Assembly (NCBI GenBank): GCA_977016875.1
Contig: CDRNST010000060.1
Location: 2,046,001-2,110,000, forward strand
DNA from: Pavona decussata
Lineage: Eukaryota
DNA length: 64,000 nucleotides
Direction of reading: 5' to 3'
Below the pieces are notes generated by a model. That model had not been told where the DNA came from, did no database searches, and was given only the letters and a program-made list of their open reading frames with translations. Position 1 is the stretch's first letter. Each line of letters opens with the position of its first letter. Made by a program: the position numbers and the translations under genes. Shown here piece after piece: positions 5,441 to 63,825 of the stretch.

Positions 5441-6598
5441 TAATAGCAAAAAAGATGCAGCAAGTGTTTCCGTGGGTTTTGTCCTTTTTTTGCTATTTGA
5501 CCATGCAAAAATAAAATTGTTGGAAAAACACTTACAGCCCACGGAAACGCTTGTTATGCAGGCTATATGTAGTGATCCACAACTTCTTATTTCAGTGAAA
5601 TATTAACTAAGATTCATACTAAAACAATTGGATTCACTCTCAATTTTTAAGCATGATAGTTTATTTGGGCTGCACCATCTTCACCTTTGTCACATCATGG
5701 AACACTGGAATACCCCAGAACACCAGGGATTGTAGCTAAAGCTTAATTAGGCCCCATTGGGCTGTACAAGTCCTCACGCTTATGTTTAGCTTCAATTTAG
5801 TGCTCTGGGCCAAGTTGTTGAAAGCCTGATTGGCATTTATGCTGGTTCATATCACTGGTTCATCTAGCTTTCCTGCCTTCAAGAAACAAAATAAGCCTGA
5901 TGGTTTTTTGAGGTCTCCTCATCATATCTTTACCCACTCTGTTACTTTTGTCTTTGATTAATGTGTTTTATGGCAAATAAATGATGATGATGTTGATGAT
6001 GATATGATGAAATGTTAACAGTGAACAAAACCTATAAGCTGTCATGGTACAATGTGGTTAATCTGGATTTGGGCTAATTTATTGTGCTTCAAACAACCAG
6101 CTCTGGTGTTGCTGGTTTTAGTACAGGAACAACATGGGAGAGGAATCTCAAACTATTAATAATTAATAGTTATTATTAATCTTATTATTAAATAAAAAAA
6201 ATGTTGTATGTAAACGCACAAATGCAAACTTTGTTACCACTTGTCCGCAGGGGATTTTCAGAGGAAATAACATCAAACATCTACAGTATATATGTATAAA
6301 AATCAAATGTTTAAAAACCCCAATGCTTTGACCTGACTGGCCAGAACTTCAGCCTTCATCAGGGGGAAGGCTGAAGTTTTAGCCAAAACGTTGGGGTTTT
6401 TAAACATCTGATTGTTATACATAACTTTTTTTAACAAAAGAAACGTTCTATTTATCATGAATCCACCTGATTACAGGCCTATCTTAAAAAAAAAAAAAAA
6501 CAGTTTATGATATTGTACAATTTAACTACAATATAGGTAGGCACTATCAATTCACACATTTAAATCTATAGTCTGATGCCTTCCTGGGTCAAAGTCTC

Positions 6599-18800: not shown

Positions 18801-21800
18801 AGAAACAGGTAGTCAGTCCATTGATGGTCCGTAAATTTCATGTCAGAATTTCATGCTTTCCTGACCGAGGAATGAGACAGATTGATGGTCTGGACAGACT
18901 GTAAAAGACTGTAACTTCTATATCATTATCATCATTGCCATTATCATTACTATTGACATTTTATGGGGACCATTTCCTGGAGCCATTTCACCTGAAGTCC
19001 AGTTGGGCATCACCCCAAGAATTTAGACGGACAATGACCAAATTGTGGCCATCCTGGGGGGTGCTAAATTGGCAACATCATCTCTAAAGTTAAGATACCA
19101 CTATTCTGAAGGTGACTCATTAAACTCATCATCATCATCAACAATGACAAAACATCATCATCATTATTACTATTAAGGGTAGGAGCAGAGGTAGGGGGAC
19201 AGAGGAGTAAACTGCCCAATATAAGAAATAAACATTATTATTATTATTATTACATTTTTGTATATATTTGTAATCAATATGTATAATGAGAGAGATGTAT
19301 TATTCAGTAAGTGACACAGGCATACCCGGAAAAAATCTGAGTGCTCCAATCAGAAGTCGAACCTAAGACCTTTCGATTACTAGTCCTGATGCATTTTTTT
19401 GGGGTATGCCTGTGTCACTTACTGAATAATACATCATTCTCATTTATTCACTAGGTTTAAAATATTCCATTACATTTATTCTATTGCGAATATGTGTAAT
19501 GGTAGGTGAAAAGTATCGGGAGTGTGCTAAGCAGGCAGTGAAGTCTGTTTGATTAGTAAGAAGAGACAGGGGAAGAGGATTTAAAAAAAAACACTTCCAC
19601 TTTCAAACCGACGGGTCTTTAAAATTACACACTCTACCTTGCCTGACATGCTTTATGTGAGGAAATCTCCTTTTCAGTGCTCTCATTAATTCCTCTCCAA
19701 CTGGTGCTCCACCACAAAGAACATCCACCAGGGTGCTTAGTTTGTAGTTATCAACCATCGGATGTTTAGCCAAGAACAGAAGCAATGGAGGGACAAGTGG
19801 AGCAATGGTCACCTGAATCAAACCAACAGTTGAAGGGCTGAGATCAAGCATAACCGATCCAAATGACTAAGATTCACCAAAGTTTTTGCATACATGTCAC
19901 CTTAAATTCCTTCAACAAATGTTGCTCCAATGTATTATCTGCTGCTTTGTGCTTTGCTTGCAATAAAAACCTATGATTATGGACAAGATTTCTGTTTTTA
20001 TCACAAAATGAAGTGCAGAGCAGTGGGTAAAACATTAGGGGTAGAAAAGAATGAGTCTTGCACCCTTCTCGTACATGTATGTAGATAATAAGAGAGTTAA
20101 ATCTACCCGAAATTTTGAAAAAGGTGGCCAAAAAAACTTGAGGAGCAGAAAGAGGTGTTGAGAAGGGCAATTTTTAATTATACCTTATAATCATCCAATG
20201 TCTGTAGAAACATCTTTGGTTCAAATCCTTGCAAAATGATAAGTTCACATCCTCTAGACAAGGCCAGTCCCATTGTGAAAGATTGGCTATAGCCATGGAA
20301 GAGAGGCAATATGGTCAAGACAGTCTCATGCATTCGCCAATTGAGAAATCCTTCACCTCCAATAATACATGCCTCTGCGATCAGGTTGTAGTGTGTAAGC
20401 ATGCAACCCTTAGGCAAGCCTGTTGTACCACTGGAGTAGAGTAAAACTGCGACATCTTCCTTGGGGTTAATGTTGACATTACTTGGAAATCTAGAGCCAT
20501 CATCTTGAATCAACTCCTCAAAAGACTCAAACCCCTTGACTTTTCCAATCGTGAAAGTGCCAGCAATACCAACTTGTAAAGCAGCTCTTTGTGCAATACC
20601 AAGGTACTCTCGATCAGTTATTAAATACCTGGCGCTGCAGTCTCGCAGCTGGTGTACAAGTTCTTGCACTCCATACTGGGGGTTGATTGTCGTTACAGTA
20701 ACACCAAGAAACAAGGATCCATAGTACACAATAGGGAACTGGGCCTTGTTAGGAAGATAGATGGCTAGCACATCACCTTTCTTAACTCCTCTCTTGGCCA
20801 GGGCAGATGCGAAGTTCCTGGTCAAAATCTTAAGTTGTTTAAAGGTGTAGTGACAACCAGATGAGGGATGAGTCTGAAAAATGCAAAATTTGCAAAACAT
20901 ACCAGTATTTAAACCTTCAAAGCCTCAACATTAATATTAGTATAACATGTATTTTTTCACTGTCCTCTTACTGTCCTCTAATTAAGATGAGAGGGTTCAG
21001 AAACCCAGCGGCAGATAGTCGGGGGGGAGTGGAAATGAATGATTGGTTTTAGTGACAGAGTTGATAACACATGTAATTTGGCCACTGTAAAGAGAATGGA
21101 GTGCTCACATTTTGAGCAGTAGACCTTTGTCAGAGCAAACGATTTGAATCTCTTTACACGTGACTGGCCAAATTACCATCAGCTCTTTTGATATTAAACC
21201 AAACACTCCCTTATGGTACCTTCAGTTGGGAGAATTTCAAACAATGAAAGAACTTCTCTTTGTTGATCATTTCCTGTATTCTTGTGATCTGCTGAACCAA
21301 ACGACTAGTGAACTATATGATGGGGTTGGTTAGTAGAGTGAACATGTGAATTGAAAGCCGCTGTGATGAACTTTAAAGCGTCAAATCTTTCATGGTGAGT
21401 TGGCATGTCACATGACATTGATCATGCACAGTTGATACCAATATGGATGACGGTATGTCTGGACTCTTTAACTTTGAAGAAGATTTTGAAGCGATACTAG
21501 CCCCCCCCCCCCCCCCCTCTACTAACAATGATATGAGCATGGGGCTACTAAAAAGAAGATTTTAGTCTCTGGCTGGCAGCGGGCGAACTCCTGTGGTATG
21601 TCTGATTACACACTGATATTGGAAGGAGAAATTAGATTCTCGTCACTTTTAGGGCTTAATTTAAAGGGTTAAGTGATTGTCATTAGTCTAGTGTGTTGAC
21701 TGCATAAACATAAATAACCGGTTATTTTACAAAACCCCACTTCCCAATTGTCATCATGGTGCACCATTTCCCTGGCGTCGGCAACCATTTGCCGTAGAAC

Positions 21801-32200: not shown

Positions 32201-35200
32201 TGTATTTGTAAGTTCTTGTTACTTTTCTAAAGTGCTCCTGTATTCGTCTTGTCCCGCCTCGATAAGTTTTGTAACTATTTTCGGGACAATTCTGTCTGTC
32301 TATATGACGTCTCAGTTTATCCAGTAAATCTTGAACTTCCAAGCCATGAAAGCTTGTCATTCCGTGTTCTCTAGCATTGCACTGAGTCCACCAGAATTGT
32401 AAAGAATTGAGGATAGGGAGTGTCCTGAAATATGGCTTAGAGATAAAATAAAGGCGCCCCTATCGCAAATTCTGGGACGGATTTCTTCAGCCGGTAGTCG
32501 CACTTCCTCAGCCATTACTTTAGCTTCCAGCGGAGGATATTGCATGCTACAGCAATAGAAGCCGTCCTCGCAAACGCTCTTTTGGCTCCTCACGCAATGC
32601 GTGTGGAGGAAAGGTTGCGTGACGAGCCAAAAGAGCGTCTGCGAGGGCGGCTTCTATTGCTGTAGTATGCAATATCCTGCGCTGTAACACCCGTCTACTA
32701 AGTGGACTGACCTTGTAGTCTTGAATAGCTCGAAGAAACGTGTTTGGTTCGAAGCGCGAGAGCAGGACAATCTTACTTCCAACATGCAGCCGTCCTGCCA
32801 TTATTATTGCTAAGCCGTAAATGTGGTAGAGGGGTAACACATTTAAAACTACCCCTACATCCTCAAGTGGTGGACCATCTTTAAAAAGGATACGCACTTC
32901 CGCTATCAGATTGTAGTGCGTCAGCATAACACCTTTAGAAACACCTGTCGTCCCACTTGAGAATGGTAAAGCAACTACATCCTTCTTTGGGTCGATTTTC
33001 ACATCGTCTGAGAATGCGGCTCCATCTTCGGATAGAAGAGAAGAAATTGACTCACAGTCTTGCGCTTGTCCAATCACAAATACGGAACGCATTCCTTTCA
33101 ACACGCCTGCACTGAAAGCCTTCTCCGCAAGCGAAGGAGTGGTAACAAGATATTTTGCACGGGAGAGTTGTAGGTAGCGAGCAAGGTCCTCGTGTGAAGA
33201 CTTAGGGTTGACTGTCGCGATTATTCCACCTATGATCGCGGCGCCGAAGAAGATGATCGGATATTCTATGACATTTGGAAGATACATGGCCATGACGTCA
33301 CCCTGTTTAAAGCCTCTTCTGGCCAGGCCATAACTAAAACGGTGTGTTTGGTCTTTAAGCTGAGCGAAGGTGAAAAATCGCCCGGACCCAGCGTCGATCT
33401 ATAGGAGACAAAAAAGAAATAATATCCTCACAATGTAAGCTCAGTTCTGGGCAGCAGGGATGGCGCAGAGGTGAGAGCACTCTTCTCCCTCCAATGTGGC
33501 CGGGGTTCGATTACGAGACTCGGCGTCATACGTGGGTTGAGTTTTGTTGTTGGTTCTCGTCCTCTCTCCGAGAGGTTTTTTCTGGGTACTTCGGTTTTCA
33601 TCTCTCGTTAAAAACCAACATTTCCAAATTTCAATTCGATCTGGAGAGTGTCTCCAATTAGCGGCTCTGCGCTAAATGGTTTGAGACTTAAATATAGTGC
33701 AAAACAGGCCCCTGGGGGGGGGGAGAGGTGCCTTTAATCTTTAATTGGTATACTTCTGAAACAGTAAAAAATAAAATACTATACTAGAAGTTTCAATAGG
33801 TAAATAATTCAGAAAGAAAACAGTAAATACTGTACTAAAAGGATATAAGCTAAAATTCACATAAACATATATACATCAATCGTTTCTACATTTCTGAAAT
33901 AGAAGTTGCCAGATTGAAAACATGTGAAAAGCACTTGAGACACAAAAGTGTATTGCAAACCATGCTGTGATTTTTGGTAGAGCTACTTCATTGAATAAAG
34001 AGACTGCGTCTCCAGATGGTGGTTTTTACTAAGCAATCAGACACTGGAAATTTTTGAACAGGCCCAGTTAAGAAAACATTATCCCAAAACGCCATTCATA
34101 TAGTAAAGAAATAATTGAGAAAACTGTTGAGATTGCCTTCATGCAAATATGTAAAAAATATTGTTTATGTGCCATTTAATTTCAGCAGCTGAGTAAAACA
34201 CAGCTATACAAGAATTAAAAGAGTTTAAAGCTTAATATTTATGGGTTCATTCAAACTCCACAGTCTGTATGGAGCTTGAAATTCAGTTATTCATTGTGTT
34301 ATACAATTGAGCCAGTTTTACTTTTTCCTGGTTACTTTTCCTTTTTATCAATGCACACCCTGTTAAAGAAACATTGTGCCATAATCATTGGAATTGCCAA
34401 TAATTTCAGATAATCGTGTCAGTTCAGATTCTCGTTTCTAGCACTCCTCAGCTGTCCTTTTGGATGGTAGGATTTAAAGGAGCAGACTGTCACCTAATTT
34501 TAGTGTCACTTTGAATAGCCAAAAGATATATATTTTGTACCTGTAGAAACATACAAAAAAAAATGGTTCGGTCTTGTTAACATTACATCCTTACTGTAAA
34601 ATCAATCATGTTTATTTTGCCCTGGTATGGCTATCTGTTAACCCTTTAAGCCTTAACAGTATTCAGCATCAAATTCCTCCTTGTAATATCAATGCTTATT
34701 CAACCCCTGAGGTCAGGAGATTTGAGGATATGATCACCCAAAGTGAATTTTCATGATATTTAATTAATTTCTCCATGGTACTACTATAAGAAAAGTATGG
34801 GGACAAGATAGGAGAATTTGCTCCTCTTTGATATTAGGGTTTAAAGGTTTAAACAGTTTCTTGTTGTTTCATTATTATACAGGTACATATCTATACAGAG
34901 ATTATGAAAAGAAAAGTTATTTCAAGGATTTCTGGTATATTTCAACCTGAATGTGCAGTTCCAGAAAATATCCATACTCCACCCATGGAAGGTTTTTTGT
35001 TTTGCACCCCTCCTCTCCCCAGGAAATTCCAGTTTAGCTTCATACTTTGCTTCCAAAATTTTGGCTTTTAAGACCCCCACCCCCCTAGGAATTTCTGATG
35101 ACCTTCCTCAGGGTGGGTATTCAGGGATGTCTGAATTGCCCCACAGTGCGTCTTCAAATATGGAGAAAATGACTTCCCCTGCCAGCAATAATAAAACGCC

Positions 35201-38651: not shown

Positions 38652-41600
38652 CTAAGGACATGCTTTTCTGTTGAGAAGGCGACGAAGTATTTTTCCACTG
38701 GGAGATTTTGGTATTTGGTCAACGAATTCCACCCCACCCCTCAGCTTTTTATGTGGTGAGACTTTCGTGGCCACGAATTCTTTGATTTCTTCTGCCGTCA
38801 CGTTTCCACGACGGACCACGAAAGCCTTCGGCAGCTCTCCGGCTTCAACATCGGGTACACCGACCACTGCCACGTCATCGACGTTCGGGTGAGTAATCAA
38901 TACCTCTTCGAGCTCGGCGGGAGGAACCTGGAAAGTAAGCACGAACAAATTACGAGCAATGCCAAAGAAAGATTTTGATGACAATGGGCTACTGTCCGGC
39001 CGGCTCCGTACAGCATAGCGTACTTGTGGCAATGGGCGAGGTGGAACTACGGTTGAGTCTGTGAAAATCAAAGGGTGTGACCACACAAATGACAGCAGAG
39101 GAGCATTTTCCTCAACAGATTCCTGTGGTATTGTTCATCTTCTTTGATTTCTTCTAAACGAAAACATTAGAAACTTTTTAATTTAGTTGCACTTTAGGTT
39201 ACGGTTAAGAGTATTTGATCAAAGAGGCAAATGTAAAATGGAAAGAGAAAAATATGTTTGGCTGGTTGTTACCTGAAATCCCTTATACTTGATAAGTTCT
39301 TTCAGTCGACCAACAATAAAAAAATATTCATCTTCGTCGTAGTGTGCGATGTCTCCTGTATGAAGCCAGCCTTCACTATCAATTGTCTGCGCGGTGGCTT
39401 CTGGGTTGTCTAAGTAACCTGAAAAACTGAATGCTGTTAATAGAATGTTTCCATCATATTCCATCAGCAAAAAGATTTTATTTTCGTGTTCTATAGGTAA
39501 CTCGGTAAACGTAAATTCGCCCCCAGAGTAAAACGTGAAGGTTTCCTTCGTAAGCTTCACTCCAACTCAGTAAAAAATGATTTCCCTGTGAGATAGTAGC
39601 TCTCTTTTTCTTTCTAAAATAGCTTCCTTAGAATCAGCTAAAGCGGTGACTTGTTTAATGTGGTTTTCTTGAGATGTTTTGGCGTTACTCCATAAAGTGA
39701 CAGCCAAACATCAGTTCATCTTCTTGGTCTTTTGTCTTTAACTCTTCTGTCTGTTAGCGTATAAAAGCTGACCCATTGCATAAAATAGAAAACGAAAGAC
39801 CGCACACGTAAAAATGGCGGGAAATTTGCGATCACGTGATTGGTTATTTTCGCCGTAAACATTATGTTTAACAAATAGATTCCATTTTGCCGTGCGTCTG
39901 TACTCTGATAACGCACGGATGACGTCAAAACGTGGTGAGAACAAAGAAGTACGCTACGAGCCGCAGGCGAGTGGCGTGACTGATGTTCTCACCACGTTTT
40001 GACGTCCTCTGTGCGTTATCAGAGTACAGACCCACGGCAAAATGGAATCTATTTGTTTTATACAATAACCAAGACATTTCAACACATTTCGAGCGAGCAT
40101 CGCGTTGACTGAGCTGAGTCAAAAACTTTCCAGCAAACTAAGTTTTAGACTACTACACACATGCAATTGTGATCTTCTAAATTAGAGTATAATCCGAAAG
40201 AATTTCACTAACAATATTTTCAAAACTAACCTTTATCCCAGAAGGAAATCCTGACCCCAAAATATTACAGCACGTAAGTCGCTTCGATTCACTGCGATTT
40301 GTAATCGATTACTCGCCATTACCGGATTTCTATCAGCGACATATTTCGACAAATATTTGTTTCCTTTTCACGTCACAACAAAGTTCTAGCTTTTTTGTCC
40401 TGGTTGAGATCACTCTCAACGGTCTTTGTCCAATTTTTTTTTTATTGGGCAGTTTTCCTTTCCTGCGAAAATTTGCCGTGTTTGTCAGCTACTCGCAAAA
40501 ACTTTGTTGACCAGTTACTCTGGCTGGACTCTAGACTCTGATCACGTGCTCCGGTCACACCACTCGATGACGTCAATCGTGCGTCTATACTCTAATCACA
40601 CACTCCTCTAGACCAATGAAAACGCGAGTTTTACACAGTTCATTGTATAATTCAGAGTAACATGCCAGATCACAAAGACTATCCTCCCTTCCCCTTATTC
40701 ATGAGTCCGGTGGTGGGAAGTCTCGAATGGACTGATGGCACTGTCATAAGCTCCTTTAAGTCCGATCTCAATCCCCTCCCTCTCCCCATCTCGTTTAATA
40801 GGGAGGTGTCCATGTTCGCCGAATTTTCTGACGTCATCTTTAATCACTAAATCCATTAAATTTGTAACTTTCCTAAAAGGAATTGTTCAGATAATGTTCA
40901 AATTTCAATGCTGAGCCCAGCTGCTATCCCTCGCGATTCCCACCTTGCAACCCTTCAGAATAGCTTATTCCCTCCCCAGCTCGTTCAATCTTGTACCCAG
41001 AGTCCTCAGGCTCTTTGGCCGGCGGTTGGTCTCCAGGAGAGACTCTGGAGAATTCAAAAAATTTAAATTTTTTTATTGGCTGCCTCGTAGCAGTTTGCAT
41101 TGTTTCACTGCAGAAATCCTGCGGTAATAAAATTCCAGTACCCCAGAGTCTCTCCTGGCGACCAACCGCTGGCCAAAGAGCCTGAGGACTCTGGGTACGA
41201 GATTGCAGCTCGTTTATGCACCTCTGTAATTCAAGCCATGGCTTTGAGTGAATAAGACCACCAGCCAGTATGAGTACTGTGGACTGTTTGCATTCCAAGG
41301 TGATTCAAAAGATCGATTGTATTCATTCTTCCATCTACGCATTTTCTTTCTCTCACCTTTCATTACTGTTGGTCCCCTTATACACATTTCTCCGCCTTCG
41401 TTTGGTCCCAGGGTTCTACCAGTATCAAGATCGATAATCTGTAAAGGAAGGAAAAACATCAAACGAAAGCAAACGATACGTAAACCCAGTGTTAGTTGTT
41501 AGAGCAGATCAGCAAAGGGGGGCTGGGATCTCAGTCAGTTATCAGTTAAATTTTCGGCCATTTCTTAGCTATCAGTTAAAATTTATATTTCTGGCCCTTT

Positions 41601-43314
41601 TTCTCAGCTATCAGTTCCCCGTTCTCGGTGATTGCACTTAAAGAAGGCAGCATTTCTCAGCCGACAGTTAAGAGTTTCGCTAATTCTTCCTATCCAATTC
41701 CAGTTGCTGTTTTCCACTGGATAAGATGCTATTCCATTGTAGATGAACTATATCATGCAGCTCACATTTTGTTACATAGAAACTGATACAGTGAAATATT
41801 GAGAAAACATTACTACAACCCTCTATTTGGCCTTTGTCAATACGGTATCTCAGGCACATATATGGGAAGGAGAGAGAAGTCAGCTTAAGCAGGGAACATG
41901 AAGCGCGATTAAGAGAAAGAAAGGGGAGATCATATCCGTTTCCCCTTCCTCTCTCCGCTTCTAATGTGCGTGTCATATAGGCTATTTCCATATACCTTAC
42001 ATTCCAAGTTTGGTAACAGAACACCTATAGAACCAAGAATATCTTTGCCATCAGGAGGACCTGGCACGTGGGAAGCTCCACTCAATTCTGTCATTCCAAA
42101 ACCTAGAGAAATTAACAAAGGAACAGCACGCAGCTTAATAATGGCAGAAGCACACCAAATGCGCGCATATGTGGTTGGAAGGCTTTTCGTTGTGATCGCG
42201 ACGTGAAAACCTAGAAGTATCGTCGGGACTATTCCTCGTGCTTTCCGACCTTGTTACAGTCAACTGCCTTTATTGCGGACACCCTCGGGACCGCGAGTTA
42301 GTGTCCTTAATAGCGAGAGTCCGTAATAGCGAGAATTTATTTCAGTCAAATGTCTGTACTCTATTTTTGCCGGGGATTTAGCTGCTGTCCGTATTATCGG
42401 GGTGTCCGTAATAGCGAGGTGTCCGCAAGGCGAGAGTTGACTGTATATATTTCGCTCCCGAAAGACACAAGATTGTCCTTGCTCGCGTGGGACTAATAAC
42501 TGACTCTTAACAGCCTGAAGTGTTTCCTTTCGGGGAAAGGGCGCGCAAGGAAGCGAGTGGAGCGCGAGGGATTTTCAGGTGACGTTAAAACTCTTTTAAA
42601 TGTCTTCCCGCCAATTGATTCATCCGCGCTGCTGGTATCATATATTGCTTCCTGCAAAACGTGCGGGAACATCTGCAACAGTTTTTCTTCATTTAGCCGG
42701 TCCTGACCTTGTCTAACGTTTCCCACGCTGGGTATCCTCTTAGCTACACCTGTAGCAAGCTCTTGAGGGAGAGGGGCAGCACCTGAGGAGATGGACTTGA
42801 GACTTGACAAGTCGAACTTGTCTACCAGCGGATGCTTGACCAAAAATAACACCAGGGGAGGGACCAGAGGANNNNNNNNNNNNNNNNNNNNNNNNNNNNN
42901 NNNNNNNNNNNNNNNNNNNNNNNNNNNNNNNNNNNNNNNNNNNNNNNNNNNNNNNNNNNNNNNNNNNNNNNNNNNNNNNNNNNNNNNNNNNNNNNNNNNN
43001 NNNNNNNNNNNNNNNNNNNNNNNNNNNNNNNNNNNNNNNNNNNNNNNNNNNNAAAAAGTCTGAGTCAAGATAACCTAAGGTAGCATCCCGCTTGACTGGC
43101 TTTGGTGATAAGCAGGAACAAAAAACAACAACAACTGGTGCTGTCAGGAGCCGTTTGGTGCTGTTCATGTGGTACTACAGTAAGCTGGGTACAGGAATCG
43201 ACGGTTTAACTTGTGCCTGGTATTGGAGGATTATGTCAGCGGACCTGGTGCACAAGTTTGTAAGGTTCAGGAGCTAGCTTGGACAAATGTAACTAAACGT
43301 TTATTATTTACTTA

Positions 43315-43378
<64 letters not shown>

Positions 43379-46273
43379 TTGCAGTGTAAAATGTAGGAAT
43401 GCTAATCATGAACCACACCACGGGGCGCACAGCGTAGCCTATGTGGCCTTAGAGGAGCTAAACTGCTCTATTAAAACTATTCCGTACTTAAAATTAATTA
43501 AATCTAACCCTAAATAACTTGGTGATAAATGTTGAAAAAAAAATACTAATAAATGAGAAATTATATAAATGGAAAGGCCTACTTCATTTATCGAATCAAA
43601 ACCACTCCCAAAACACGCGCCTAAAATGTCACTACTGGGTTCCAACGATTACTATTACTATCATCATTATTATTATCATCATTATCATTATCATAATCAT
43701 TATCATTATCATTATCATTATAATTATCATTATTATTATCATTATAATGATCATGATCATGATCATGATCATTATCATTATCATTATCATTATTGATTTG
43801 CTACTACGCACGAATTTAACGGTCACTTCACTGGCTCTTTCCGATTGTGCAAGCTTGTGATTCCATGTTCCCTGTCATTCCACTGAGTACAAGTGGACTC
43901 ATTTCTCTAGGATTTCAAGGGGTGGGGTGTCCTCTGAAATATGGCTTAAAGACTAGTTACGGGTTTCAAGGATCTGGAATGGAAAATGCTCTACCAAGTA
44001 TTCTGCGGCGTATTACCCCCTCTCTACCAAACCCCTCCATCCTTCCCGAAGTCACACCTCCCCTGACTGAGGCATACAATATCCCTCGGGTACCCTCTCT
44101 CCCAATTACACTGACCTTGTAGTCTTGAATAGCTCGAAGAAACGCGTTTGGCTCGAAGCGCGAGAGCAGGACAATCTTACTTCCAATATGCAGCCGTCCT
44201 GCCATTATTACTGTTAAGCCGTAAATGTGGTAGAGCGGTAACACACTTAGAACCCCTCCTGCGTCTCGCTCGGGTCGTGCATCATTTCCAAAGAGGACAC
44301 GTATTTGCGCTATCAGATTGTAGTGCGTCAGCATAACACCTTTAGAAACACCAGTCGTCCCACTTGAGAATGGCAAAGCCACTACATCCTTCTTTGGGTA
44401 GATTTTCACAAAGTCTAGATAGGTGGATGCGGCTCCGTCTTCGAATAGAAGAGAAGAAATTGACTCACAGTCTTCTGCTTGTCCAATCACAAACACGGAA
44501 CGCATTTCTTTCAACACGCCTGCACTGAAAGCCTTCTTCGCAAGCGAAGGAGTGGTAACAAGATATTTTGCACGGGAGAGTTTAAGGTAGCGAGCAAGGT
44601 CCTCGTGTGAAGACTTAGGGTTGACTGTCGTGATTATTCCACCTATGATCGCGGCGCCGAAGAAGATGATCGGATATTCTATGACATTTGGAAGATACAT
44701 GGCCATGACGTCACCCTGTTTAAAGCCTCTTCTGGCCAGGCCATAACTAAAACGGTATGTTTGGTCCTTAAGCTGACTGAAGGTGAAAAATCGCCCGGAC
44801 TCGGCGTCGATCTGTTATGGTAAAAAACGTTGAAAATAAAGACGATGATGATGATAATGATGATGGTGGCTTAAGAGTAAGTTTAGTGGAAATGACAAAG
44901 TTTTTTCAGTGGAAAAACAGAAACTTATTGTTTTTTCGTTGTTGTTGTTGTTGTTGTTGATGTTGTTTTTTTGTTCGTAATTTCATTAACTCAGTTTTGA
45001 ACAAAGGCAACACAAACCCAAACAACCCAAAAAGAATTGACCACGGCAAAAGGAACTCTCCATGTACATCTCATTCCGCATTTGGTTCGAATTAGGGCAC
45101 GAACTTTGTTTAACTCCTTCCTAAGAGGATTTTCCTAGATTTTCAGCGCGTTTAATTTACCAGTTTTTAAAGCATCAAACGAGGGGAAAATTGAACGCGT
45201 TTGTCAGTCTCTATGTACAGGAGTTAAATTTTCGTCTGGATAATGTTTGAAGTCCCTTCTCGGCCTTTTTCGTTGTAATTTCCAGTGTATTCATTGTAGT
45301 TTTTATAATTTCCACGTGCATTTCGTTCACGAAGGCTCGATTTCCTTAAGGTTTGAGTGCACTTCTGAGTCGTATACATTAACAATTGTAATGTTTGAAG
45401 ATGTCACGTAACCCAACTTCAGCCCATTTGCTTTGCAAAGAAATCGACGATCATTTGCAAGAAAGCATGAATTTCGAAACCTTTTGGTCGACTTTTAAAG
45501 TACTTGGAGTATTCTTACTCGTTTATTTTCATGCCAAACAATAAGAAACATCACTACTCTCTTAAGCCCACACTACCTCATTTGTCTTACATATTATCCG
45601 ATTTCATATCAAGACGACGGGAAACTTGCAGCTGAACTAGGCCTATACGGAATTCCGTCCGACAGAAACCCGTTTAATATGAATTTAAGACGGTTTTCCG
45701 CCGGTCTATTAAAGACGAGTATCTCCTCTGATTTTTCCGCCGTTTTAGAAGGGAAAATGTTTTTTTGTGACGGGAAACTCGTCCTACACCGAATTCAAAT
45801 CAGACGAGTGTTCCGTCTCCGAAGACGAATTCCTGTCTGAGTCCGTTCAGATATGAATAGGAAATTAAATAAACGTGAGCTTCTTTGCTCAAAAAGGCAC
45901 AAATTGTTCCGTTTTTTCGCCACAGCATGATATTATTGTTAAAAAGTATTCTGAACATAAGTACAATTCCTAATTTTTGGCATCATAGATGAAAGACGAT
46001 CTGTGTTAGACAAGAACTGAAAATATATAACGTGACCTCGTATGCAAAATTCAACAATAATCAATAACACGGTCCAGCTTTCATCAGACTATAAAATGTC
46101 GATATAGCTGGCACATTCAAATGTTGAGGTAAAACAAAGAACGAATTAAATTGTGTCTTACGTACAATAGCTTGTCTGTCTCCATACTCATCAAAGTTCT
46201 GGAAAATGAACTGAGTCAATGACAAATTGTCGGGGATGTTAATATCTGGCCATTTGCTTCGAATGGTACTCAT
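38652..46273 (-). CDS. 4CL/luciferase-like acyl-CoA synthetase copy D, about 529 aa; close paralog of C with no PTS1
   Basis: Exons 46273-46166, 44811-44116, ~42882-42708 (first ~11 nt in the N gap), 42102-41996, 41438-41357, 39418-39273, 38927-38652. All core motifs intact. Ends NRKACP*. Confidence 0.88.
39870..40057 (+). repeat. Long palindromic element with central CGAG-CC-GCA-GG-CGAG
   Basis: Arms AACAAATAGATTCCATTTTGCCGTG / CACGGCAAAATGGAATCTATTTGTT. Confidence 0.8.
40986..41205. mobile_element. MITE with a 9-bp TSD (Mutator-like), apparently recent
   Basis: TIR CAATCTTGTACCCAGAGTCCTCAGGCTCTTTGGCC / GGCCAAAGAGCCTGAGGACTCTGGGTACGAGATTG, flanked by CAGCTCGTT on both sides. Confidence 0.85.
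42257..42443. mobile_element. Tc1/mariner-type MITE (TA TSD); partial copy at 2831-2985
   Basis: ta|CAGTCAACT...AGTTGACTG|ta. Internal sequence is shared with 2831-2985. Confidence 0.8.
42872..43052. other. Assembly gap (N run) covering the acceptor of copy D exon 3
   Basis: Run of n. Confidence 1.
43315..43795. repeat. (ATT)n and (ATC/ATT)n microsatellites
   Basis: Visible at 43315-43377 and ~43650-43795. Confidence 0.95.
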
Positions 46274-47819: not shown

Positions 47820-48387
47820 TATTATATCCGCCAATATTAACCGTCGGGTGCCTCAGACGTCTGTAGTCAGTTTCTGTGGCGCGGTAGCACCTGGCCTAAA
47901 ACAACGTTTTTACTGATTGTTTCTGGCTCTCACTCACACGGTACATTTTAACAAACCTCTTTATTGTTGAAAATAAACCGCGGTTACATTCATTACTTCA
48001 CAAAGTCCGTAGTACATCAAGCTCAGAGCAATAGATGATTATATGAAAATTGACTAGAACTGAACGAATCAACGTTTGTTACACTTAACCTGAACTGTCA
48101 ACTGTTAAGGGAGTAACAAGCTAAGGACATTTATACCGACTTTAGCAAGCAGAAACTACTTTATTCTACAATCAACTTCAACACTACAAAACTTGGTAAG
48201 AACTCACGAATTCTAAAACAAGATTTAACACAGCAGTAAACTGTGATCACTTCAAAAATCGTCGCCATAAGAATCACACAGTTCGCAGTTTTGTTCGCTT
48301 GTTTAAATCACACAGTTATTAAATCCTACGTTGTCATGTCCGGTGAATCAAAGCAAATCATGTTGAAACGTGGCACAGACTGCTGAC

Positions 48388-51300
48388 TTACTTAGCGCGG
48401 AGTTTTTCTAACTCCACCCGCATAGCTGAAACTACTCGATCCATGTGTTTTTCAGTATTGTAGATGTGAGGCGAGAATCGCATTCTGTTGCCCTTCTTGG
48501 TGGAAACGCCGATCTTGTGGTTTTCGTACAACCCGTTATACACCTGCTCGCTCAATGGTGGATTCACACTCGCATCCTCTGGCCACTTAATAACCATGAT
48601 TCCATGGAACAGGTCCTCCTCGGACGGCGTCTCGATCACGAATTTCTGCTCTTCCGGCAAAAAGCTAAGCAGGTTCTCCAGGTTTTTCCTCAGACGAGTC
48701 GAAAGCGCTTTGATCCTGTCTTCTATCTTATCATAGCCGATGAGGCCCATCACGTCGGCAGTGTACAACAGCCCGATGAGATTCGTGTCATTTCGCTGAC
48801 CCACCATCTCAAATCTGGAGGCATCTAATGGAAGTGGATCTGGTGGTGGCTGCATCTCTCCATTGTAGCCGATGTCTTTAGGTGCGAAGTTAGGGATGCG
48901 GTCTTCCTTCATGTACAAGATGCCAGTCTCCTTGGGCCCCAAAAACCACTTGTGGCTCCCGCCACTGTAACTATCACAGCCCATGTCCTTAAGGTCATGG
49001 TTGAGAGCGCCCCAGGATTGGGCCCCGTCAACATGGACATGGATGTTTGGGTGCTTTGAGTGAATGTCTTGGCACAGCATTTTGGCTGGGAGGCGAGTTC
49101 CACTCAAGTGCGAGATCTGACAAAGATAAAAGATGATCACAAAAGATTTTAGGGTATGAAACCACTAGAGGAAAACAACTTCTCTTACATTCTCTTAAAT
49201 GCTCCTGCAGCTGCTTAAATGAAATCGAAGCGATGCTTGCACAATTTACAAGGCAATCATATAGTTTTAGTCAGCGGATTTATGTGTTGCGCATGTGCAG
49301 TTGTTTGAAAATTCAACACCTGAAAATGTCGGAATCGAGTCATGAAAAGAAATTCCGGCCGAACGGTAAGTTTAGTACTGCCTGTTTTCGCCTGCCTGAT
49401 TCACAGATATATTGAATTTAGCAATTTTATTTTTACTTTACATAATATTTATGTACTCTTTGTTGCTTGTATAAAGAGGTTTTGGAAAGATTTCCCTTTC
49501 TTTTTCCCATAATTCTCATGACCTCAGGGGTTGAGCTTGATATTATAAGAAGAAATTTGATGCTGATCACTGTTAGGGTTAATTATTTATACGGTCTTCG
49601 TTCAACGTCTTTGGGATTACTACGCTTTATTCCTCGAAGTTTTATATATTTTTCAAAGAATAAATATCTTCGAAGACCTATAAAAAATTGTTATTATCCC
49701 GGGATTGTTATACAGCTCTGAGCGCCCCGACCCCGGAGCCTAGAACATAAAGTCTTCGTAGATATCATGCCATAATATATTTTCCTGTTAATGTTGAAAA
49801 TGAAAGGAAAGGCCATCTAAATTAAAATGAGAGCTGGCGGAATACAAAGAAACCAAACGACAGAGAAACGAAATAAAATTTTCTTTTCAAGTTGTGAGAG
49901 CATCGCCTTTCTGTCCCAGGCCCTGCTCTTTATCCCTCACCCCACCCCAACACCCGCCTGTAAAGAGCGGTGAAGACGTGATTAGATGTAACTGTTCAAG
50001 ACCGCATATTGCTTTCACTAGATTTGCAAATCTGAAATAGCCTGCTTGTGAAAAAGAATAATCCTGTCAATCGGTGGGCGGTTTTCGAAGCCATGCATCA
50101 ACCGATGAAACCCCAGATGATTTTACATCTCTGTAAGTCCTTGTCTAGACTGGTGTTGTTTTATTGACAATCCGGTTGCCTTAAAGTGGTTTAGTCTGAT
50201 GAAGGCTGCAAGTCTTTGTCCTTTGCAGTTAAATTTTGATCCCGAATCTTACCAGTATACACACTAAATTAAAACTAAAAAAATCCTATATTCAAAACAT
50301 TGCTGGTTTTTTCATGAACAATTATAGTAACCTATCTTTCATAACGCGTGATTAGCTTACCATTCATAAGATTGAATGCTAGTACTCGCCCACTACTTCA
50401 CTGAAAACAAAATAACGACCTATCGTGCGCTTTCGCCAGAAATTCTTGTGCATCCACCATGCGCCTGATATCATTAGGCTACACAGAGCGAGTTCCTTGA
50501 GAGTTTTGCCTTATTACTCGGGCCGTAAGGCGGCCCGAGTTAAGTTTTCGGTCGCGTTATCAAATTCTTTTTTTATTTTTTTAGGGTCACGATGGGCCGA
50601 GAGATAAAACTTCGGGCCACGAGTTAAGTTAATCATTGTTCAAGTCCGGATATTTACAGGTTTGGACACAAATGATCTAAAGTAGTCATTAAGGATTTCC
50701 GAGATAGTTCTCTCTGGGAAGACACAAATCACTAAAAATATTAAGACTTTAGTATTCATAGAGAGAAGTATCTCGGGAATTCTTCATGACTACTTTAACT
50801 CATTTCTGTCCAAACCTGTAGATATCCGGACTTGAAAAATGATGACGGAAAACGCTTGCAAAAGTTTGCGTTTTAATACAATGCCAGTGATCACCACAAG
50901 ATTTGATTGCTGTTAGCGTCATCATGACCCGGGGTCGGATGAACAGACGCGAAGAAGCTTAATCTGTTTATGTGTCTATTTTTAGTGTCTTTTGTGCATG
51001 ACAATTAAAATACCGTTTTTCCCTGTATTTCATTCTGACTGCACGAAATGCAATTCTATCTGGTGGTTACTTATTGCCTCACTATATCTCTGTATCTATC
51101 GATTTGGGGGAATTAACGATGCTGGAGGTTATCACTGCCAAAATATTATATTGTAAGCTTACTGACCACGCAGTCAAATGTGGCCCGAGTATAAGCTGAA
51201 AACTGCTTTTTGTTTCTGCGATTCCTTCCCTCGCCATATTTAGCAAAAGATTGTTTGATGGGATATTTGAAGTACTTCTACTTTCTGGCCAGAATTAGTC

Positions 51301-52331
51301 AATGAACAGCGAGTAAATGATGCAGTACGCGGAAAGTGATGAAGCGAAGTGGATTATTAAGAGACAGATGTTTGAGAACGTTGTCCACTGGTATTGGAAG
51401 GTGGCATTTTAGTTCGATTAAATGCATGTTAAAAGATCTTCAACATTAACATGACCAGTTTTCTCAAACTTCATGATTGTACTGATTATATTCACTGACA
51501 TGATATTTTTATCACTGACATGTGCCCCAAGTATTTAAAAGCGGCATTCTAGCTTCAAATTGCCAAGAAAATCCCAGCTGAACATTAGCCCAAAAAAGAA
51601 TATTCGTCGCTTTAGATAATCATTTGTGGTTGGCTGTTTTGATTTCTATGTCAACGTTGTAAATATAAGTAAAATTTAATATATTCGCTTACCTCACTAA
51701 ACGCAACCAATTTGGTGTTCTTGTTCACTTTTTCAAGGAACTTTTGCACAATTTTGAATTGATCCGTTTCGCCTTCAAGGTCCAGTACCTTGATATTGAT
51801 ATTTTTAAACCGCTGCTGTCTGATTTTCCAAGCTACCTCACCGCCAGTGGGATGGTTTTCGTTCCATACTAGGACTTCCTCTCCAGGAGCAAAATCCAGG
51901 CCATTGCTGATGACTGCATTGGGGTCTGAACCATTCCTCAGAAAAGCGACCAACTTTGGCTCCACGTTAAGTTGCTTGGCGATCAGCGCTCGGGCGAACT
52001 GGATGGTGTACACAAACGGCTTAATTCGCTTCTGGATGGAAATATCTCTGTTCCAATCCATCCCAATGCAGTTTAGAAAAACCTGCACTGGGTGGAAGAG
52101 GATCGACAAGTTTGCAGCGTTAATTGGGACGCAATCGGCGTAGTCATCATAAGCGAACAGGCTACGGACATAGTTCCACAACTCATCGTCCGGGATGGTC
52201 GATAAAGTGTTGATGATCTCTCCGAATGTTTTCTCAAAGGCGAGGAAGTTGTCACGTTCGATCAGCCCATGGCAGCGGTACCAGTGTGCGACTTTGAAGG
52301 TAGGGCGTTCCTGCAGAGTGAATTCGGCCAT
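48388..52331 (-). CDS. Class-V (fold type I) PLP-dependent enzyme, isopenicillin-N-epimerase/cysteine-lyase-like, 455 aa, two exons
   Basis: Exons 52331-51693 and 49116-48388, phase 0 (GAG|GTAAG...TGTCAG|ATC), Kozak-like gtcaccATGG. Motifs INAANL, RNGSD, ENHPT, HVDGAQSWG, GSHKWFLGPKETG (PLP lysine), MRFSPHIYNT. No NifS/SufS Cys loop. Confidence 0.88.
50510..51195. mobile_element. Non-autonomous element in the PLP-enzyme intron, with an internal ~210-bp hairpin at 50633-50842
   Basis: Ends TTA(T)TACTCGGGCC...GGCCCGAGTATAA. Internal arms TTCAAGTCCGGATATTTACAGGTTTGGACA / TGTCCAAACCTGTAGATATCCGGACTTGAA. Confidence 0.55.
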
Positions 52332-54600
52332 GGTGACGCCTTGAAGCAAGCCTCAGTAAAACCTCAACTGCGATACTAATACTCGAGCACTGTTGTGCAA
52401 TTTCTTTTATGCAAAGCGCAATGGGCGGAATCAATCAGATGATGAGCGTCTTGTCATTTTGGAAACAATTAAGAAGCTGAGGTCTAGCCTAGGTACAATG
52501 GGTCAATTTAGTATTGGCGCATACATACCAGCACGTACAACTATACATATTTAACCAGTTGAGAAAAAAGAGAAAATATTTTCTTCATTGAGCGGGGTAT
52601 CAACATAATAAGCCGAACACTGCAGTTTTTAAAACATCTAGGCACCGAATTGTGAGAAGGCATTGGAGACCTCAGCGGACCCCAGGACGTGCTTTTTTCA
52701 TTCGCTAATCTATTATTGTAAAAAAAAAACTTTCGTCGGTAATACAGTTAAGCTCACTTTCAACAAATGTTGTTTTCAAACAAGGTACTTTAAATCAATT
52801 TTTCGGTGTTTTTGCAGTTTAGTTTAATAAACCCACGAAGTTTTCTCACGCTGCAATGCGCAAGTGACTTAATTATTCACATCCATCAGACTGAAGCCAT
52901 TTTAATTTTTTGTTTCAACTGACAAACGTCAAGTGCCACTTGATGGTGCCACCCCACTTTCACGAAAAAAAAAAAAAACACCTGATTACACAGCACACTT
53001 GGTTGAACTTTGAATACCGAGCGCCAGATTGACATGTTTTAAAGTTAAGACGGTTTTACTCAGTTACCAAACGTTGGCAAACCCATTTTTGCAAATACTC
53101 TTCTCTTGGGCCATATCAAACTTATCATGCTAAAGTTTTGCAGCAATAGTTGAGAAATTCCAATCACCTTAAAATCTCTATTTTCTTGCCGGATTTTCCG
53201 ATTGAATAGATGTGGTGTAAGGTTAGTGTGGACGTATTAAGTACAAAAATTTAACTTGACAAAAGAGAAAATATTTCACCATTGAACAAGGTATCACTGA
53301 TACAAGTTGAAAACGCAAAGTTTCGCCAAAGCTAAGTGTAAGATTTTGTCTCAGATGAGAAAACATTGGAGACCTCAGTTGCCCTCATGTGTTGCTAAAT
53401 TTGGTAATTTATTCTTACACGAAACGTTCGGCTGTAAAACATTTAAGTTCACTTTCAAACGTTTTTTTTTTTAACCAAGATACATTTTTCGGTGTTCTGT
53501 CAGTTACGTTCGATGAATTCACGAAGTATTTTCACGCTGCAGTATGAAAAGAGCAGGTTTCAATTAAAATTAAAATAAGACGTGTTGACTCAGTTGGAAA
53601 GCACTCGAAAGTTAAAATATAAAGCAAAAGTTAAAACGCTAAACTGCAATCGTGAAAGACTGTGCTGACCAGCTTTGTATATTGCTCTATTGCTCTAATC
53701 ACAAGAATACAAATAACTTTAGTGTCACTGGATATGCAGAGTAAAGCATGGTGCAGTACATTTGTGTAATCTGTCGTGGACGAATTTTATTGGTTTGGCT
53801 GAACTTTTGTGATTGTCATGCCATCAGTAGTTGCTCATTCGCTACTACATGTGACAGTCGGAAGTTGGACCCAACTGGGCCAATCTAGTAGTTGCTCATT
53901 CGGTACTACATGATCCAAACTGTAAATCTACTGGCCGTTTCTTATTGTCTGGATTTATATTATTGGGATAAACATTCACGATGAAAAGCTTTGTTAATTA
54001 ACCGCCCAACTATGCACTATGCACTCCTGGGTGCTTTACATTGGATTAATGTAAATATTCCTTCTCTTTTGCAGAGCTATATTGAAGTTATCTTGTCAAA
54101 ACTTTTACAGCGATAATCGCCGGAGAAATGTCAGTTATGTTAAAGTCTCATGTTTCTTCATTTTCCGATTCAACAGTGTTCTCCTTCGCTAGCTGGAAGG
54201 AGCGTTGTGTGACGACACCAAGAACGGCTGCGTACATTGGATCATGGAGACTATAATTTAACAGGATCAAGTGCAAATTAATATAGTCTAAGCGCGTTGC
54301 AGTTCCATTCCAGCATGGGGTAATATTTTTTAACTTCCAGAGAAAAGAAACGAAAATTGATCTTCATCGTTGCACAAGACACAGCCAGAGAAACGTTCAT
54401 TTAAATAAAATGATGTCACCATCTACCAATTGCTGGCTGGCGTTGTTTATTTTCGCTAAGTTGGCAAGCTTTAAAAACCAAACAATGCACTTGTTCTTGG
54501 CTTCCTTACACTGGACCAATGTAAATACCCTGTCTCTCTAGCACACTGAAACTTTGAAGCAACAATTGTGAACCTTCTGTCATCTTCTCAAGCAGTTTAA

Positions 54601-61475: not shown

Positions 61476-63825
61476 AATGGACTGACTGACTGACTGACTG
61501 ACTGACTGTGAAATACAATTATCAATAGCAACAGCAACGATGGTAGGAGCAACAGAACAACACTGAACGGCAATGTCTAACCATCCATCAAACTAAACGA
61601 AACTGTAGTTGTACAACAACAACATAAATAATAACGGAAGAAGCAACCAAACAATAGCCTGCGTGCAGACGTCACTTATTTCCTATGTTCACTCTTTTCC
61701 TAGTGCAATAAAGGAAATAGGAGACGTCTGCACGCAAGCTACCAAACAACAGCTGAAAGATCTACTCCATGCCAAGTTTAAGAATTGGTCCATGCTTAGC
61801 GTGCGTATATCGAGTTATGGATGCACGCGGGAAGTTTGAAGAGCACGAGAGAAGCGTAAGAGTTGCTCGATGCGTAGCCAAGTGCACCCATAACTCAATA
61901 TACGCACAGCTAAAAGTCATGAACCAATTCTTTTATAACATAGTGACAACAAAGTATCGAAACGTGATACGCGAAAAACAGGTTTTATTTGTGATTGGTT
62001 ACAAAATTCTCTCAATGCGCTGCACCGAAAAGCAAAGGTTCTTATCTGCTGTTTACACGCCACAATGGTATGGTCTGAACGAGAAAGTTTCATCTGAAAT
62101 TGTCGATGAAAATTTGCTTCTTTAAATTAGTTTGTACAAAGTAAAACTAAGCGACGGAAACCCGAGTTTGTCTGCAAGTTGCACACGTCATTTTATGGAC
62201 GCACGGCCGTGCGTACGTTTAGAAAGTACCATGATGGCGCCAACAGGAATTAGATAGGGAAGCACGCGCACTATGTTATAAACAGAATTATTACAACAAC
62301 ACAAATAACTACAGAATGCTTCATATATACACCTACCTTGCCTTATTTGCTGCACATTAGGGAGGCGTTTCAACATGGCTTCTTCCAGCTCCTTGCTCAA
62401 TGGGGCGGCTCCACAGCCTACACGGACCAGCCTGGACAAATCATATTTATCCACTAGGGGGTGCTTGGCCAAAAACAAGACTAGTGGAGGGACGATGGGT
62501 GCATCCGTGACCTGTAACATGAAGTATTAGGGACGACACAAAACAGCAGGTTTCATGAACAAATGATGGGTCGGTATTTTTTTGTTGTCCTCTGCAAACC
62601 AACAACGTCAAGTGATCAAATTCGAGTCTTGGTGAATTTTGTCTTTCTTCCCCACAATTTAAGCTCACCATTCGAAAGGGAATAGGTTACTCAGTTGGTA
62701 TTTTTTTCATAGGATTACGTTATTTCGCATGTAAATAACGTAAACACATCAACCGTGGAATAAATCCTAGGGGTCAACGCTAAATTCAATATCGACAATA
62801 TGAGTACAATCCACTAGAATTTTCTGTGAATTTTGGTCATCAGCCATTTTGCTATGACGAATTATAGAATGTGATTACTGAAGTACATGTGAGTGGGATT
62901 TTTAAGGCCATAAAGTTGATAAGAAAGAGAAAAAAGTTTTAGATTCATGCACATGCGCTGAAATGTGAACCCCTCCCTTTAAATGCAATTTGAACGAGTT
63001 GGAATGCATAATAAATAGTTTTAAAAAGGTGATGTTATACGAGACGATTTGCAACATTGATTTTCAGCACACCGAATCCAATGAAAATTGTGCAGAAAAT
63101 CGTCGTGTCAACTTCCTACGCGACAGTGTTGCGCTGAATCGACTAGTTTAACATCACCACCACCAAGTAGGAAAAGCACTTCCCGAAGAGTACATTGTAC
63201 TCACATCATGTACTTTTGATTCAAAATGTTCAATGGAAATCGATAAAATTGCACCACCATATTGCACAGACTACTGTACATCTACACCTCATGATTGCTC
63301 AATAACGGCTACATGCGACCACAGACTCAATAGTGTATTCCAGTGAATGGATAAACAAAATGACTGCTGTGGCGAACTATAAAAAAGCTGAAATTTCGTG
63401 GCTATACTTCAAGTCTCTCGCTCTGGGAACGGAATCGGCTGAAAGCAATGAGCGACGGGCCACAGTAAAGGTAATATGAGACTTTGGCCAGAACCAAAAA
63501 GAGCCCAAGGAAAGCCTCTTGAATGTCGTGCCAAATTCTCCATCATTATAAACAGCAAGCTAACCTTGTAGTCTTGTAATGTTTTGAGGAAGGCCTCAGG
63601 TTCAAAGCGGGGGAGGAGCACCAGCTTCCTTCCAAGATGTAGACATCCACCCATCATTACCAACAGCGCGTATATGTGATAGAAAGGGAGGAGGTTGAGA
63701 ACCACTGCTTTGTCGGGAAAGATGTCATCATTGAATATCAGAATCATTGCAGCTACAAGGTTGTGGTGTGTGATCATGACGCCTTTGGACAGACCGGTTG
63801 TTCCACTTGAGAAAGGTAAAGCCAC
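57649..63825 (-). CDS. 4CL/luciferase-like acyl-CoA synthetase copy E (5' part beyond the window), peroxisomal (C-terminal AKL)
   Basis: Exons 63825-63565, 62511-62337, 61340-61237, 61133-61052, 59038-58893, 57945-57649, in frame. Motifs [30 protein letters not shown]. Ends HAKAKL*. Confidence 0.9.
59632..60320 (+). repeat. Tandem pair (~290-bp period) of palindromic elements with a CGAG-CC-GCA-GG-CGAG apex
   Basis: TTTAACAAAT(g/c)GACGGCAGTTT starts at ~59632 and ~59922. The tail ACAATAGCTACGAGCCAATCAGCGCGCG is also duplicated. Confidence 0.8.
60621..60943. mobile_element. PIF/Harbinger-type MITE of the same family as 5021-5355
   Basis: Shared internal sequence and right end GTGTGTCGCTGGCT|taa. 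Confidence 0.75.
61410..61508. repeat. (GACT)n microsatellite
   Basis: Directly visible. Confidence 0.95.

Follow-up and report, generated by a model that had tools for sequence, protein, structure and literature searches.

How a gene for a class-V pyridoxal 5'-phosphate (PLP) enzyme of bacterial appearance came to stand in the genome of the stony coral Pavona decussata, whether it works there, and what its product may do are the questions raised by the 64,000-nt stretch of DNA analysed here (the window; coordinates below are positions within it, and the gene is on its minus strand). A sequence-only reading of the window had proposed horizontal acquisition from a bacterium. We consider it likely that this is a functional nuclear coral gene derived from a bacterial class-V PLP enzyme, which an early anthozoan acquired probably without introns and with the N-terminal helix already present.

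The gene has two coding exons (52331-51693 and 49116-48388) that together encode 455 residues. Exon 1 (51693..52331, 213 codons; defined from the sequence) begins with an ATG at 52331, with an in-frame TGA eight codons 5' of it, and carries an N-terminal helical extension (approximately residues 1-45), the PINAANL motif and the stacking His of ENHPT. Exon 2 (48388..49116; 242 codons at 49116-48391, followed by TAA at 48390-48388; also defined from the sequence) carries HVHVDGAQ, SHKW and RMRFSPHIYN. Between them lies a 2576-nt phase 0 intron (49117..51692) with GT..AG ends, identified from the sequence, from contig joints and from an orthologous mRNA; the splice sites read GAG/GTAAGC at the donor and, after a polypyrimidine tract, TTGTCAG/ATC at the acceptor. 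The orthologous protein, P0136, is a 477-residue protein of a related coral encoded by two transcript contigs, L001 of a JGI sample and L002 of a Logan run. Exon 1 is 74% identical to its residues 1-214 and exon 2 is 72% identical to its residues 215-474, and these two alignments therefore place the junction exactly between ...FSE and (I/V)SHLSG. When the L001 mRNA was aligned to the window, the break coincided exactly with 49117-51692.

Expression was assessed by aligning same-organism contigs from four runs (four studies) to 47900-52500; the run type "RNA" is a guess in the source table rather than stated run metadata. The joint 49116/51693, which omits 2576 nt, was found in contigs from all four runs, with ends CT..AC on the plus strand that correspond to GT..AG on the gene strand, and one 721-nt contig spans the junction with 442 nt of exon 2 and 279 nt of exon 1. 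Summed contig depth was about 50-700 over the exons versus 0-15 over the non-repeat intron, and because the intron-less form is far deeper than the intron itself we take it to be a spliced transcript. The gene is spliced and expressed. The 3' untranslated region (UTR; 47980..48387, its end approximate) was delimited by RNA-type contigs of the four runs that extend from 48387 to about 47978-48007, and AATAAA stands at 48165-48160 and at 47965-47960. A minimal 5' UTR (52332..52365) was drawn from contigs of three runs that stop between 52294 and 52365; one run, which also has low-depth intron coverage, has a contig extending beyond 52500. Within the intron, the stretches at approximately 49440-49593 and 50980-51133 reach summed depths of up to about 9600 with many loose ends, and are repeat fragments transcribed or abundant elsewhere in the genome. 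The sequence-only reading had predicted a single spliceosomal intron with this 51693/49116 junction and a spliced product of 455 residues, and had staked its case on the existence of spliced transcripts. The exact joint is present in the contigs of four runs out of four and in the orthologous mRNAs, and the reading frame gives the predicted length.

To place the protein in a family, the exons were queried separately, and the natural ortholog P0136 and its relatives served as full-length queries. The Pfam family PF00266 (Aminotran_5; cut-off 21.5 bits) matches exon 1 at 27.1 bits and exon 2 at 62.6 bits, over consecutive profile positions (42-146 and 149-294, respectively). In exon 1 the stacking residue His160 of ENHPT is encoded at 51854, and in exon 2 Asp30 of HVDGAQ, the Asp that faces the pyridine N of PLP, is encoded at 49029 (the Gln of this motif is kept too), the Schiff-base Lys56 of SHKW at 48951, and the carboxylate-binding Arg213 of RMRFSPHIYN at 48480 (all on the minus strand). 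Arg213 is the counterpart, in the alignment to SufS, of the Arg that binds the substrate carboxylate there. By its profile matches and by its active-site residues alike, the protein belongs to the class-V, fold-type I PLP enzymes of PF00266. In alignments to SufS, the coral loop that precedes the C-terminal Arg is shortened and has no Cys (IGVSTKKGNRMR). Aligned to PvdN, the family profile is gap-free at the site of the SufS Cys loop, and aligned to SufS it needs an insertion there; the persulfide Cys loop is missing across the whole family, beyond the coral gene alone. The motif blocks quoted in the sequence-only reading are present, the His, Asp, Lys and Arg it described as intact could each be mapped, and the persulfide Cys it reported as absent is indeed lacking.

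All 29 invariant and all 29 near-invariant positions in an alignment of 25 family members are kept in the window exons. Ratios of nonsynonymous to synonymous substitution rates (dN/dS; Nei-Gojobori, calculated per exon) were 0.32 in the comparison with a congener-level contig (dS 0.14), 0.20 for a relative at dS 0.34 and 0.11-0.12 for the P0136 transcript (dS 1.2-1.3); purifying selection acts on the gene.

The origin of the gene was examined with two trees under LG+G4, a quick one (82 rows) and a careful one (57 rows). The careful tree was built with IQ-TREE with 1000 ultrafast bootstraps and the SH-aLRT branch test (the Shimodaira-Hasegawa-like approximate likelihood ratio test), and the two window exons were entered in it as separate rows. 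The two trees concur. All cnidarian sequences of the careful tree fall into a single clade (support 100/99), which lies within a clade of proteins with a helix-type N-terminus (99/96), and this clade in turn lies within bacterial sequences with a twin-arginine (Tat)-type N-terminus (94/93, 82/90 and 100/99), with distant class-V proteins outside. The best tree that holds the 30 bacterial-type ingroup rows together without the cnidarians was rejected by the approximately unbiased (AU) test (delta lnL 51, p = 0.002). Supported nesting within bacteria, integration into the host genome, and expression with purifying selection, by which a transfer from bacterium to animal can be recognised, are all found for this gene, and the proposal of horizontal acquisition is supported by the nesting of the cnidarian clade in the maximum-likelihood tree and by the AU test.

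Database searches gave a matching picture. With exon 2 as query, the best matches were exon-sized open reading frames (ORFs) on large eukaryotic contigs (88-45% identity), followed by Xenia and then by bacterial or metagenomic proteins of about 415 residues (37-44%). Searches with P0136 and with a nine-protein anthozoan profile returned as named eukaryotes only the octocorals Paramuricea, Dendronephthya and Xenia, all other named matches being bacterial, and an exhaustive HMMER search gave 75 representatives at an expected value (E) of 1e-30 or lower. No named eukaryote outside Anthozoa appeared in the exon, P0136 or profile searches or among the 75 HMMER representatives inspected, where most matches are nameless. 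Among those representatives, P0320 is a 131-residue fragment resembling the start of exon 2 with many conserved positions altered (e.g., YVDGVQVWG and GSYKWFLGFKEIG), and is possibly a decayed copy in some anthozoan genome. When one genome was scanned for every bacterial and archaeal species, at least 591 loci of the family turned up in bacteria; the best 80 come from Acidobacteriota, Gemmatimonadota (Longimicrobiales), Gammaproteobacteria (Pseudohongiella, OM182 and Maricurvus), Desulfobacterales and Rhizobiales at 32-39% identity. No RefSeq-named protein of a stony coral or sea anemone was among the matches in the databases searched, and the gene therefore looks patchy within Hexacorallia and Anthozoa; this describes those databases and is not proof of absence. 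The expectation of the sequence-only reading that cnidarians would be the only animal members holds for named database proteins, all of which are anthozoan, and needs to be qualified by this patchiness, with RefSeq-named stony corals and sea anemones not among the matches. Xenia has two homologous proteins (364 and 465 residues). In Dendronephthya gigantea, the last and the first exon each have a further tblastn match downstream of the annotated gene (L099, 12763-12921 and 17261-17467; 60% and 83% identity), which suggests a second copy, tandem or partial.

The N-terminal extension can be followed across the same boundary. Many bacterial members start with a twin-arginine signal, as PvdN does, and another bacterial set starts with a helical segment, L..L...G(L/V)(I/L)S, at the position of the coral extension. 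Profile-profile comparison of the anthozoan N-termini with those of this bacterial set (hhalign) gave a probability of 93% with an E of 2.9e-7 over 36 columns, and residues 1-60 of the AlphaFold model of P0136 form three helices with a predicted local distance difference test score (pLDDT) of 87-98. Given this homology and these ordered helices, the extension came with the gene and was not added by the host. It is, on the model, a structured part of the enzyme with no sign of a targeting peptide, and we infer from the absence of a signal that the coral enzyme would be cytosolic. The extension of about 45 residues and of unexplained role noted earlier is therefore real; it is not an unexplained add-on, being helical and common to the nearest bacterial subgroup.

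Introns differ among the anthozoan genes. A second anthozoan gene type (P0165/P0175; locus L098), which adjoins laminin-G and histidine-phosphatase genes, has exactly two exons joined at the same place and in the same phase as in the window gene (...TFSE / ISNVSG). The Dendronephthya gene has five exons, with introns after approximately residues 65, 166, 274 and 399 and none at the place of the window intron. Because intron positions differ, the gene probably arrived intronless and gained introns independently in anthozoan lineages, which is the simplest reading.

Four explanations of the origin compete. Contamination of the assembly by a bacterium or symbiont would account for the bacterial affinity of the protein and for a GC content at third codon positions (GC3) of 0.60 and 0.64 in the exons, above that of the neighbouring host exons (0.42-0.47). 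Against it stand a canonical spliceosomal intron, spliced out in RNA-type contigs from four studies, a position between animal genes in a window of about 40% GC throughout (multi-exon AMP-binding genes on the minus strand flank the gene on both sides, and the window also holds a TFIIE-beta ORF), synteny in a related species, and relatives on contigs of up to 1.7-3 Mb. Contamination, which the sequence-only reading had called unlikely, is excluded by the splicing, the animal flanking genes and the synteny to the point where its probability is negligible. An ancient eukaryotic gene, inherited vertically and lost in all animal lineages but Anthozoa, would fit a gene that is old and common to stony corals and octocorals at 36-48% identity, and whose bacterial identity of only 33-44% reveals no recent donor. 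Such a history is improbable with the cnidarians nested two to three well-supported nodes inside bacteria and the alternative rejected by the AU test, with no named non-anthozoan eukaryote among the matches of the word searches or the strongest matches of the exhaustive search, and with intron positions that differ between the window lineage and Dendronephthya, as expected for an intronless arrival.

A shade less improbable, while still unlikely, is that anthozoans received the gene from another eukaryote, a protist or alga, that had taken it from bacteria. This is raised by P0262, a member of a neighbouring clade encoded on a contig of 42% GC (L011) beside mitochondrial-carrier ORFs that lie in two pieces (6879-7874), next to an uninterrupted threonyl-tRNA synthetase gene. 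The contig may belong to a microbial eukaryote or to an intracellular bacterium with eukaryote-like genes, and its content is the reason why a small probability is kept for an intermediate eukaryotic host. The closest relatives of P0262, P0261 and P0267, speak against such a host: both are on gene-dense contigs, one of them deposited as a metagenome-assembled genome (MAG) of Pseudomonadota, and among the neighbours of the MAG relative are genes for EamA, Usp and a PRMT-like protein, as is seen in intracellular bacteria. Moreover, the P0262 clade is not resolved as the cnidarian sister, the node being an open polytomy. Other sister contigs look bacterial: L010 (66% GC) has a sigma-54 activator and an adjoining M20 peptidase, L015 (68% GC) has KAS III, acyl-CoA dehydrogenase and FHA genes in one direction, L013 has overlapping ORFs, and L097 is gene-dense.

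Direct acquisition from a bacterium by an early anthozoan remains our preferred account, and several points weigh against it. The groups compared in the AU test were named after the tree had been seen, and the outgroup consists of more distant class-V proteins rather than a curated root. No close donor was found (the best bacterial identity is about 37-44%); most sister sequences are unnamed metagenome proteins, and the P0262 contig, with its split mitochondrial-carrier ORFs, could be eukaryotic. A single ancient transfer also demands several losses, or database gaps, given that no RefSeq-named protein of a stony coral or sea anemone was among the matches. The protein tree groups the P0165 type with octocorals weakly (89/64), whereas the common intron groups it with the window clade; the long stem of the window clade (0.57) could have produced this placement by branch attraction. 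As to function, the chemistry is inferred from resemblance only, and no curated model reaches its cut-off.

That last point calls for a closer look at the known relatives. No curated NCBIfam model came near its cut-off for the window exons or for ten full-length members, the best scores being those of PvdN (up to 157 bits; cut-off 650) and of a SufS subfamily (up to 154; cut-off 475). The SufS model (TIGR01979 / NF006791; cut-off 475) gave 54 bits for exon 2 and 84 for full-length P0136, the PvdN model (NF051467; cut-off 650) gave 20.8 and 48.5 bits for the two exons and 81-157 for full-length members, and the EgtE model (TIGR04343; cut-off 400) gave 20.7 bits for exon 2 and 41-74 for family members. 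An identity as the EgtE/Egt2 sulfoxide C-S lyase was ruled out as a matter of membership by these scores. No CefD model or structure was found among the NCBIfam and PDB matches of the exons or the family, and the name "isopenicillin-N epimerase" occurs only where JGI assigned it automatically, to some of the bacterial homologues. Compared one at a time with solved structures, the exons gave weak matches to SufS, C-DES and PvdN. The family profile had PvdN as its best match (1e-45, with the alignment covering nearly the full length), then SufS (about 1e-36) and C-DES (about 1e-32). P0136 was modelled with AlphaFold (mean pLDDT 89.5; predicted template modelling score, pTM, 0.89) and the model was searched with Foldseek, where PvdN ranked first (template modelling score, TM, 0.86 by target length) and many SufS entries came next. 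By profile and fold, the nearest characterised relative is PvdN, followed by SufS and C-DES, where the sequence-only reading had pointed to CefD-like proteins. With no curated model reaching its cut-off and no characterised member found in the searches, the family is uncharacterised.

PvdN, a periplasmic PLP enzyme of Pseudomonas that tailors pyoverdine (PDB 5i90 and 5hh9), shares with the coral family a short active-site loop without the SufS Cys, and with many bacterial members a twin-arginine signal. Identity between PvdN and the family is low, about 19-25%, and where PvdN has DGVH and HEHYS the coral family has DGAQ and ENHPT. The coral protein has neither an RR motif nor a hydrophobic N-terminal stretch, and thus differs from PvdN in having no Tat signal; to our knowledge, no animal has a pyoverdine pathway. 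The type II cysteine desulfurases SufS and CsdA share with the family the fold, the PLP Lys, Asp, His and Gln and the carboxylate-binding C-terminal Arg; the family differs from them in lacking the persulfide Cys loop, in scores far under the cut-offs and in having no SufE/SufU partner context. The cystine C-S lyase C-DES (PDB 1elq and 1n2t) is a class-V enzyme that carries out beta-elimination without a catalytic cysteine. It was matched by the family profile (2.6e-32) and by Foldseek, more weakly than PvdN and SufS, and differs from the coral family in having no N-terminal helical segment. PvdN itself is exported by the Tat system and turns the N-terminal glutamate of pyoverdine into succinamide; the reaction is a decarboxylation in which the amino nitrogen is kept (PMC6206403).

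On this basis, the coral protein would be a presumably dimeric (as in the class-V fold), cytosolic enzyme that takes an alpha-amino acid, or a metabolite ending in a free alpha-amino acid, and holds it on PLP as an external aldimine. A reaction that needs no persulfide-carrying Cys would follow, most likely a beta-elimination (as a C-S or C-Se lyase, like C-DES) or a PvdN-like decarboxylation. A lyase-type reaction is our leading, tentative candidate, with somewhat less than an even chance; PvdN-type decarboxylation appears distinctly less probable, transamination or racemisation would be less probable again, and other reactions take up the remainder. The NCBI name of the Xenia homologue would make the enzyme a SufS-like cysteine desulfurase. 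In favour of this idea, SufS ranks second among the solved relatives and is, for some members, the best match in NCBIfam. We regard it as highly improbable: the family as a whole lacks the persulfide-Cys SufS loop, the SufS model scores 54-154 bits where its cut-off is 475, and where the family has its one conserved Cys close to the carboxylate-binding Arg (RLCPH), the window clade has Ser. The database name "cysteine desulfurase SufS-like" of the Xenia protein is misleading, because the whole family is without the persulfide Cys.

Changes in the stony-coral branch bear on the same question. The window gene, P0136, P0173 and P0174 differ at three sites that are otherwise conserved from bacteria to octocorals or the P0165 type: Asn to His in (V/I)SHLSG (His3 of exon 2, codon at 49110), Cys to Ser in NAANLS (exon 1, codon at 52106), and Cys to Ser in R(M)RFSPH (exon 2, codon at 48474), all on the minus strand. 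The Asn-to-His change falls where SufS has its substrate-contacting Asn. Taken with the long stem branch, these replacements suggest a shift of substrate or chemistry in the stony-coral lineage, in which the proposed enzyme would have evolved faster as the three otherwise conserved residues were replaced. A more specific proposal, which we put forward as very unlikely in its full form, is that the coral enzyme is a Cys-independent C-S lyase or a PvdN-type decarboxylating tailoring enzyme in an anthozoan-specific small-molecule pathway, e.g., at a thiohistidine (ovothiol-type) beta-lyase step, re-tuned in the stony-coral branch through the SN-to-SH and Cys-to-Ser changes. An OvoB-like lyase is not known in animals outside Hydrozoa (Brancaccio et al. 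2021; PMC8433421), and the restriction of the gene to some anthozoans argues against a general ovothiol-lyase role. An identity as OvoB was ruled out as a matter of membership, OvoB being described as matching class I/II enzymes (PMC8433421).

Bacterial gene neighbourhoods were surveyed at 80 loci by naive ORF calling, which produces antisense artefacts in high-GC genomes. In 22 of the loci L022-L091, a RidA-family (L-PSP) gene lies in convergent orientation between about 20 nt and 4 kb downstream of the bacterial homologue; those loci that were checked are MAGs of Longimicrobiales or Gemmatimonadota, with the RidA gene on the opposite strand. RidA proteins quench enamines released by PLP beta-eliminases. 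This synteny is lineage-specific and was not used for function. No common neighbour theme was found in the closest bacterial subgroup (an M20 peptidase, an FHA protein and unknown proteins), and the bacterial neighbourhoods narrow the reaction in no way.

A tandem series of exons for AMP-binding enzymes (acyl-CoA synthetase or luciferase-like; PF00501 and PF13193) extends across the window on the minus strand, at 11222-11749, 20178-20900, 32547-33293, 38652-39086, 43966-44706 and 63409-63825, and the PLP gene sits within this array. Because the P0165-type locus L098 has other neighbours, the linkage to AMP-binding genes is not conserved. TFIIE-beta is encoded on the plus strand at 3800-4816 by an uninterrupted ORF of 338 residues with core and winged-helix domains, which is either a single-exon gene or a retrocopy. 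The GC3 of the PLP exons (0.60 in exon 1 and 0.64 in exon 2) compares with 0.42-0.45 in the AMP-binding exons and 0.47 in TFIIE-beta; codon bias of an expressed gene and residual foreign composition are both possible reasons. A contig of a related species (L009) is collinear with the window over the part that starts at exon 2 and continues downstream across the AMP-binding gene. On that contig, exon 1 was not found within 10 kb upstream of exon 2, and positions 1-9500, 5' of exon 2, hold a block of intronless ORFs that includes a Pox_A32-type packaging ATPase and a fibre-like protein of 867 residues; the block resembles a virus-like or Polinton-like element inserted in, or close to, the intron. 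An assembly gap lies in the window at 42872-43052.

Bacterial genes fixed in cnidarians are a known phenomenon; the transfer itself is unsurprising, and the case is unusually clean. Bhattacharya et al. (2016; PMC4878875) reported 41 transferred genes in corals, among them, as entry 38 of their Table 1, a bacterial-origin "aminotransferase" common to Anthozoa. Entry 38 could not be matched to the PLP gene, since the paper gives neither a sequence nor a family for it. The coral genes of that study and the PLP gene are alike in being bacterial metabolic genes fixed in Anthozoa; the query species there was Seriatopora, and no named pocilloporid homologue of the PLP gene was seen. The recipient clade of the PLP gene is old, comprising stony and soft corals, and purifying selection still acts on the gene, and the differing introns among anthozoan lineages would record independent gain after its arrival. 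The analysis also corrects the database name of the Xenia homologue. The enzyme comes from a large bacterial family for which our searches found no curated model and no characterised member, and which stands beside PvdN, an enzyme that performs an unusual PLP reaction; the coral gene offers both a reason and a eukaryotic setting for characterising this family.

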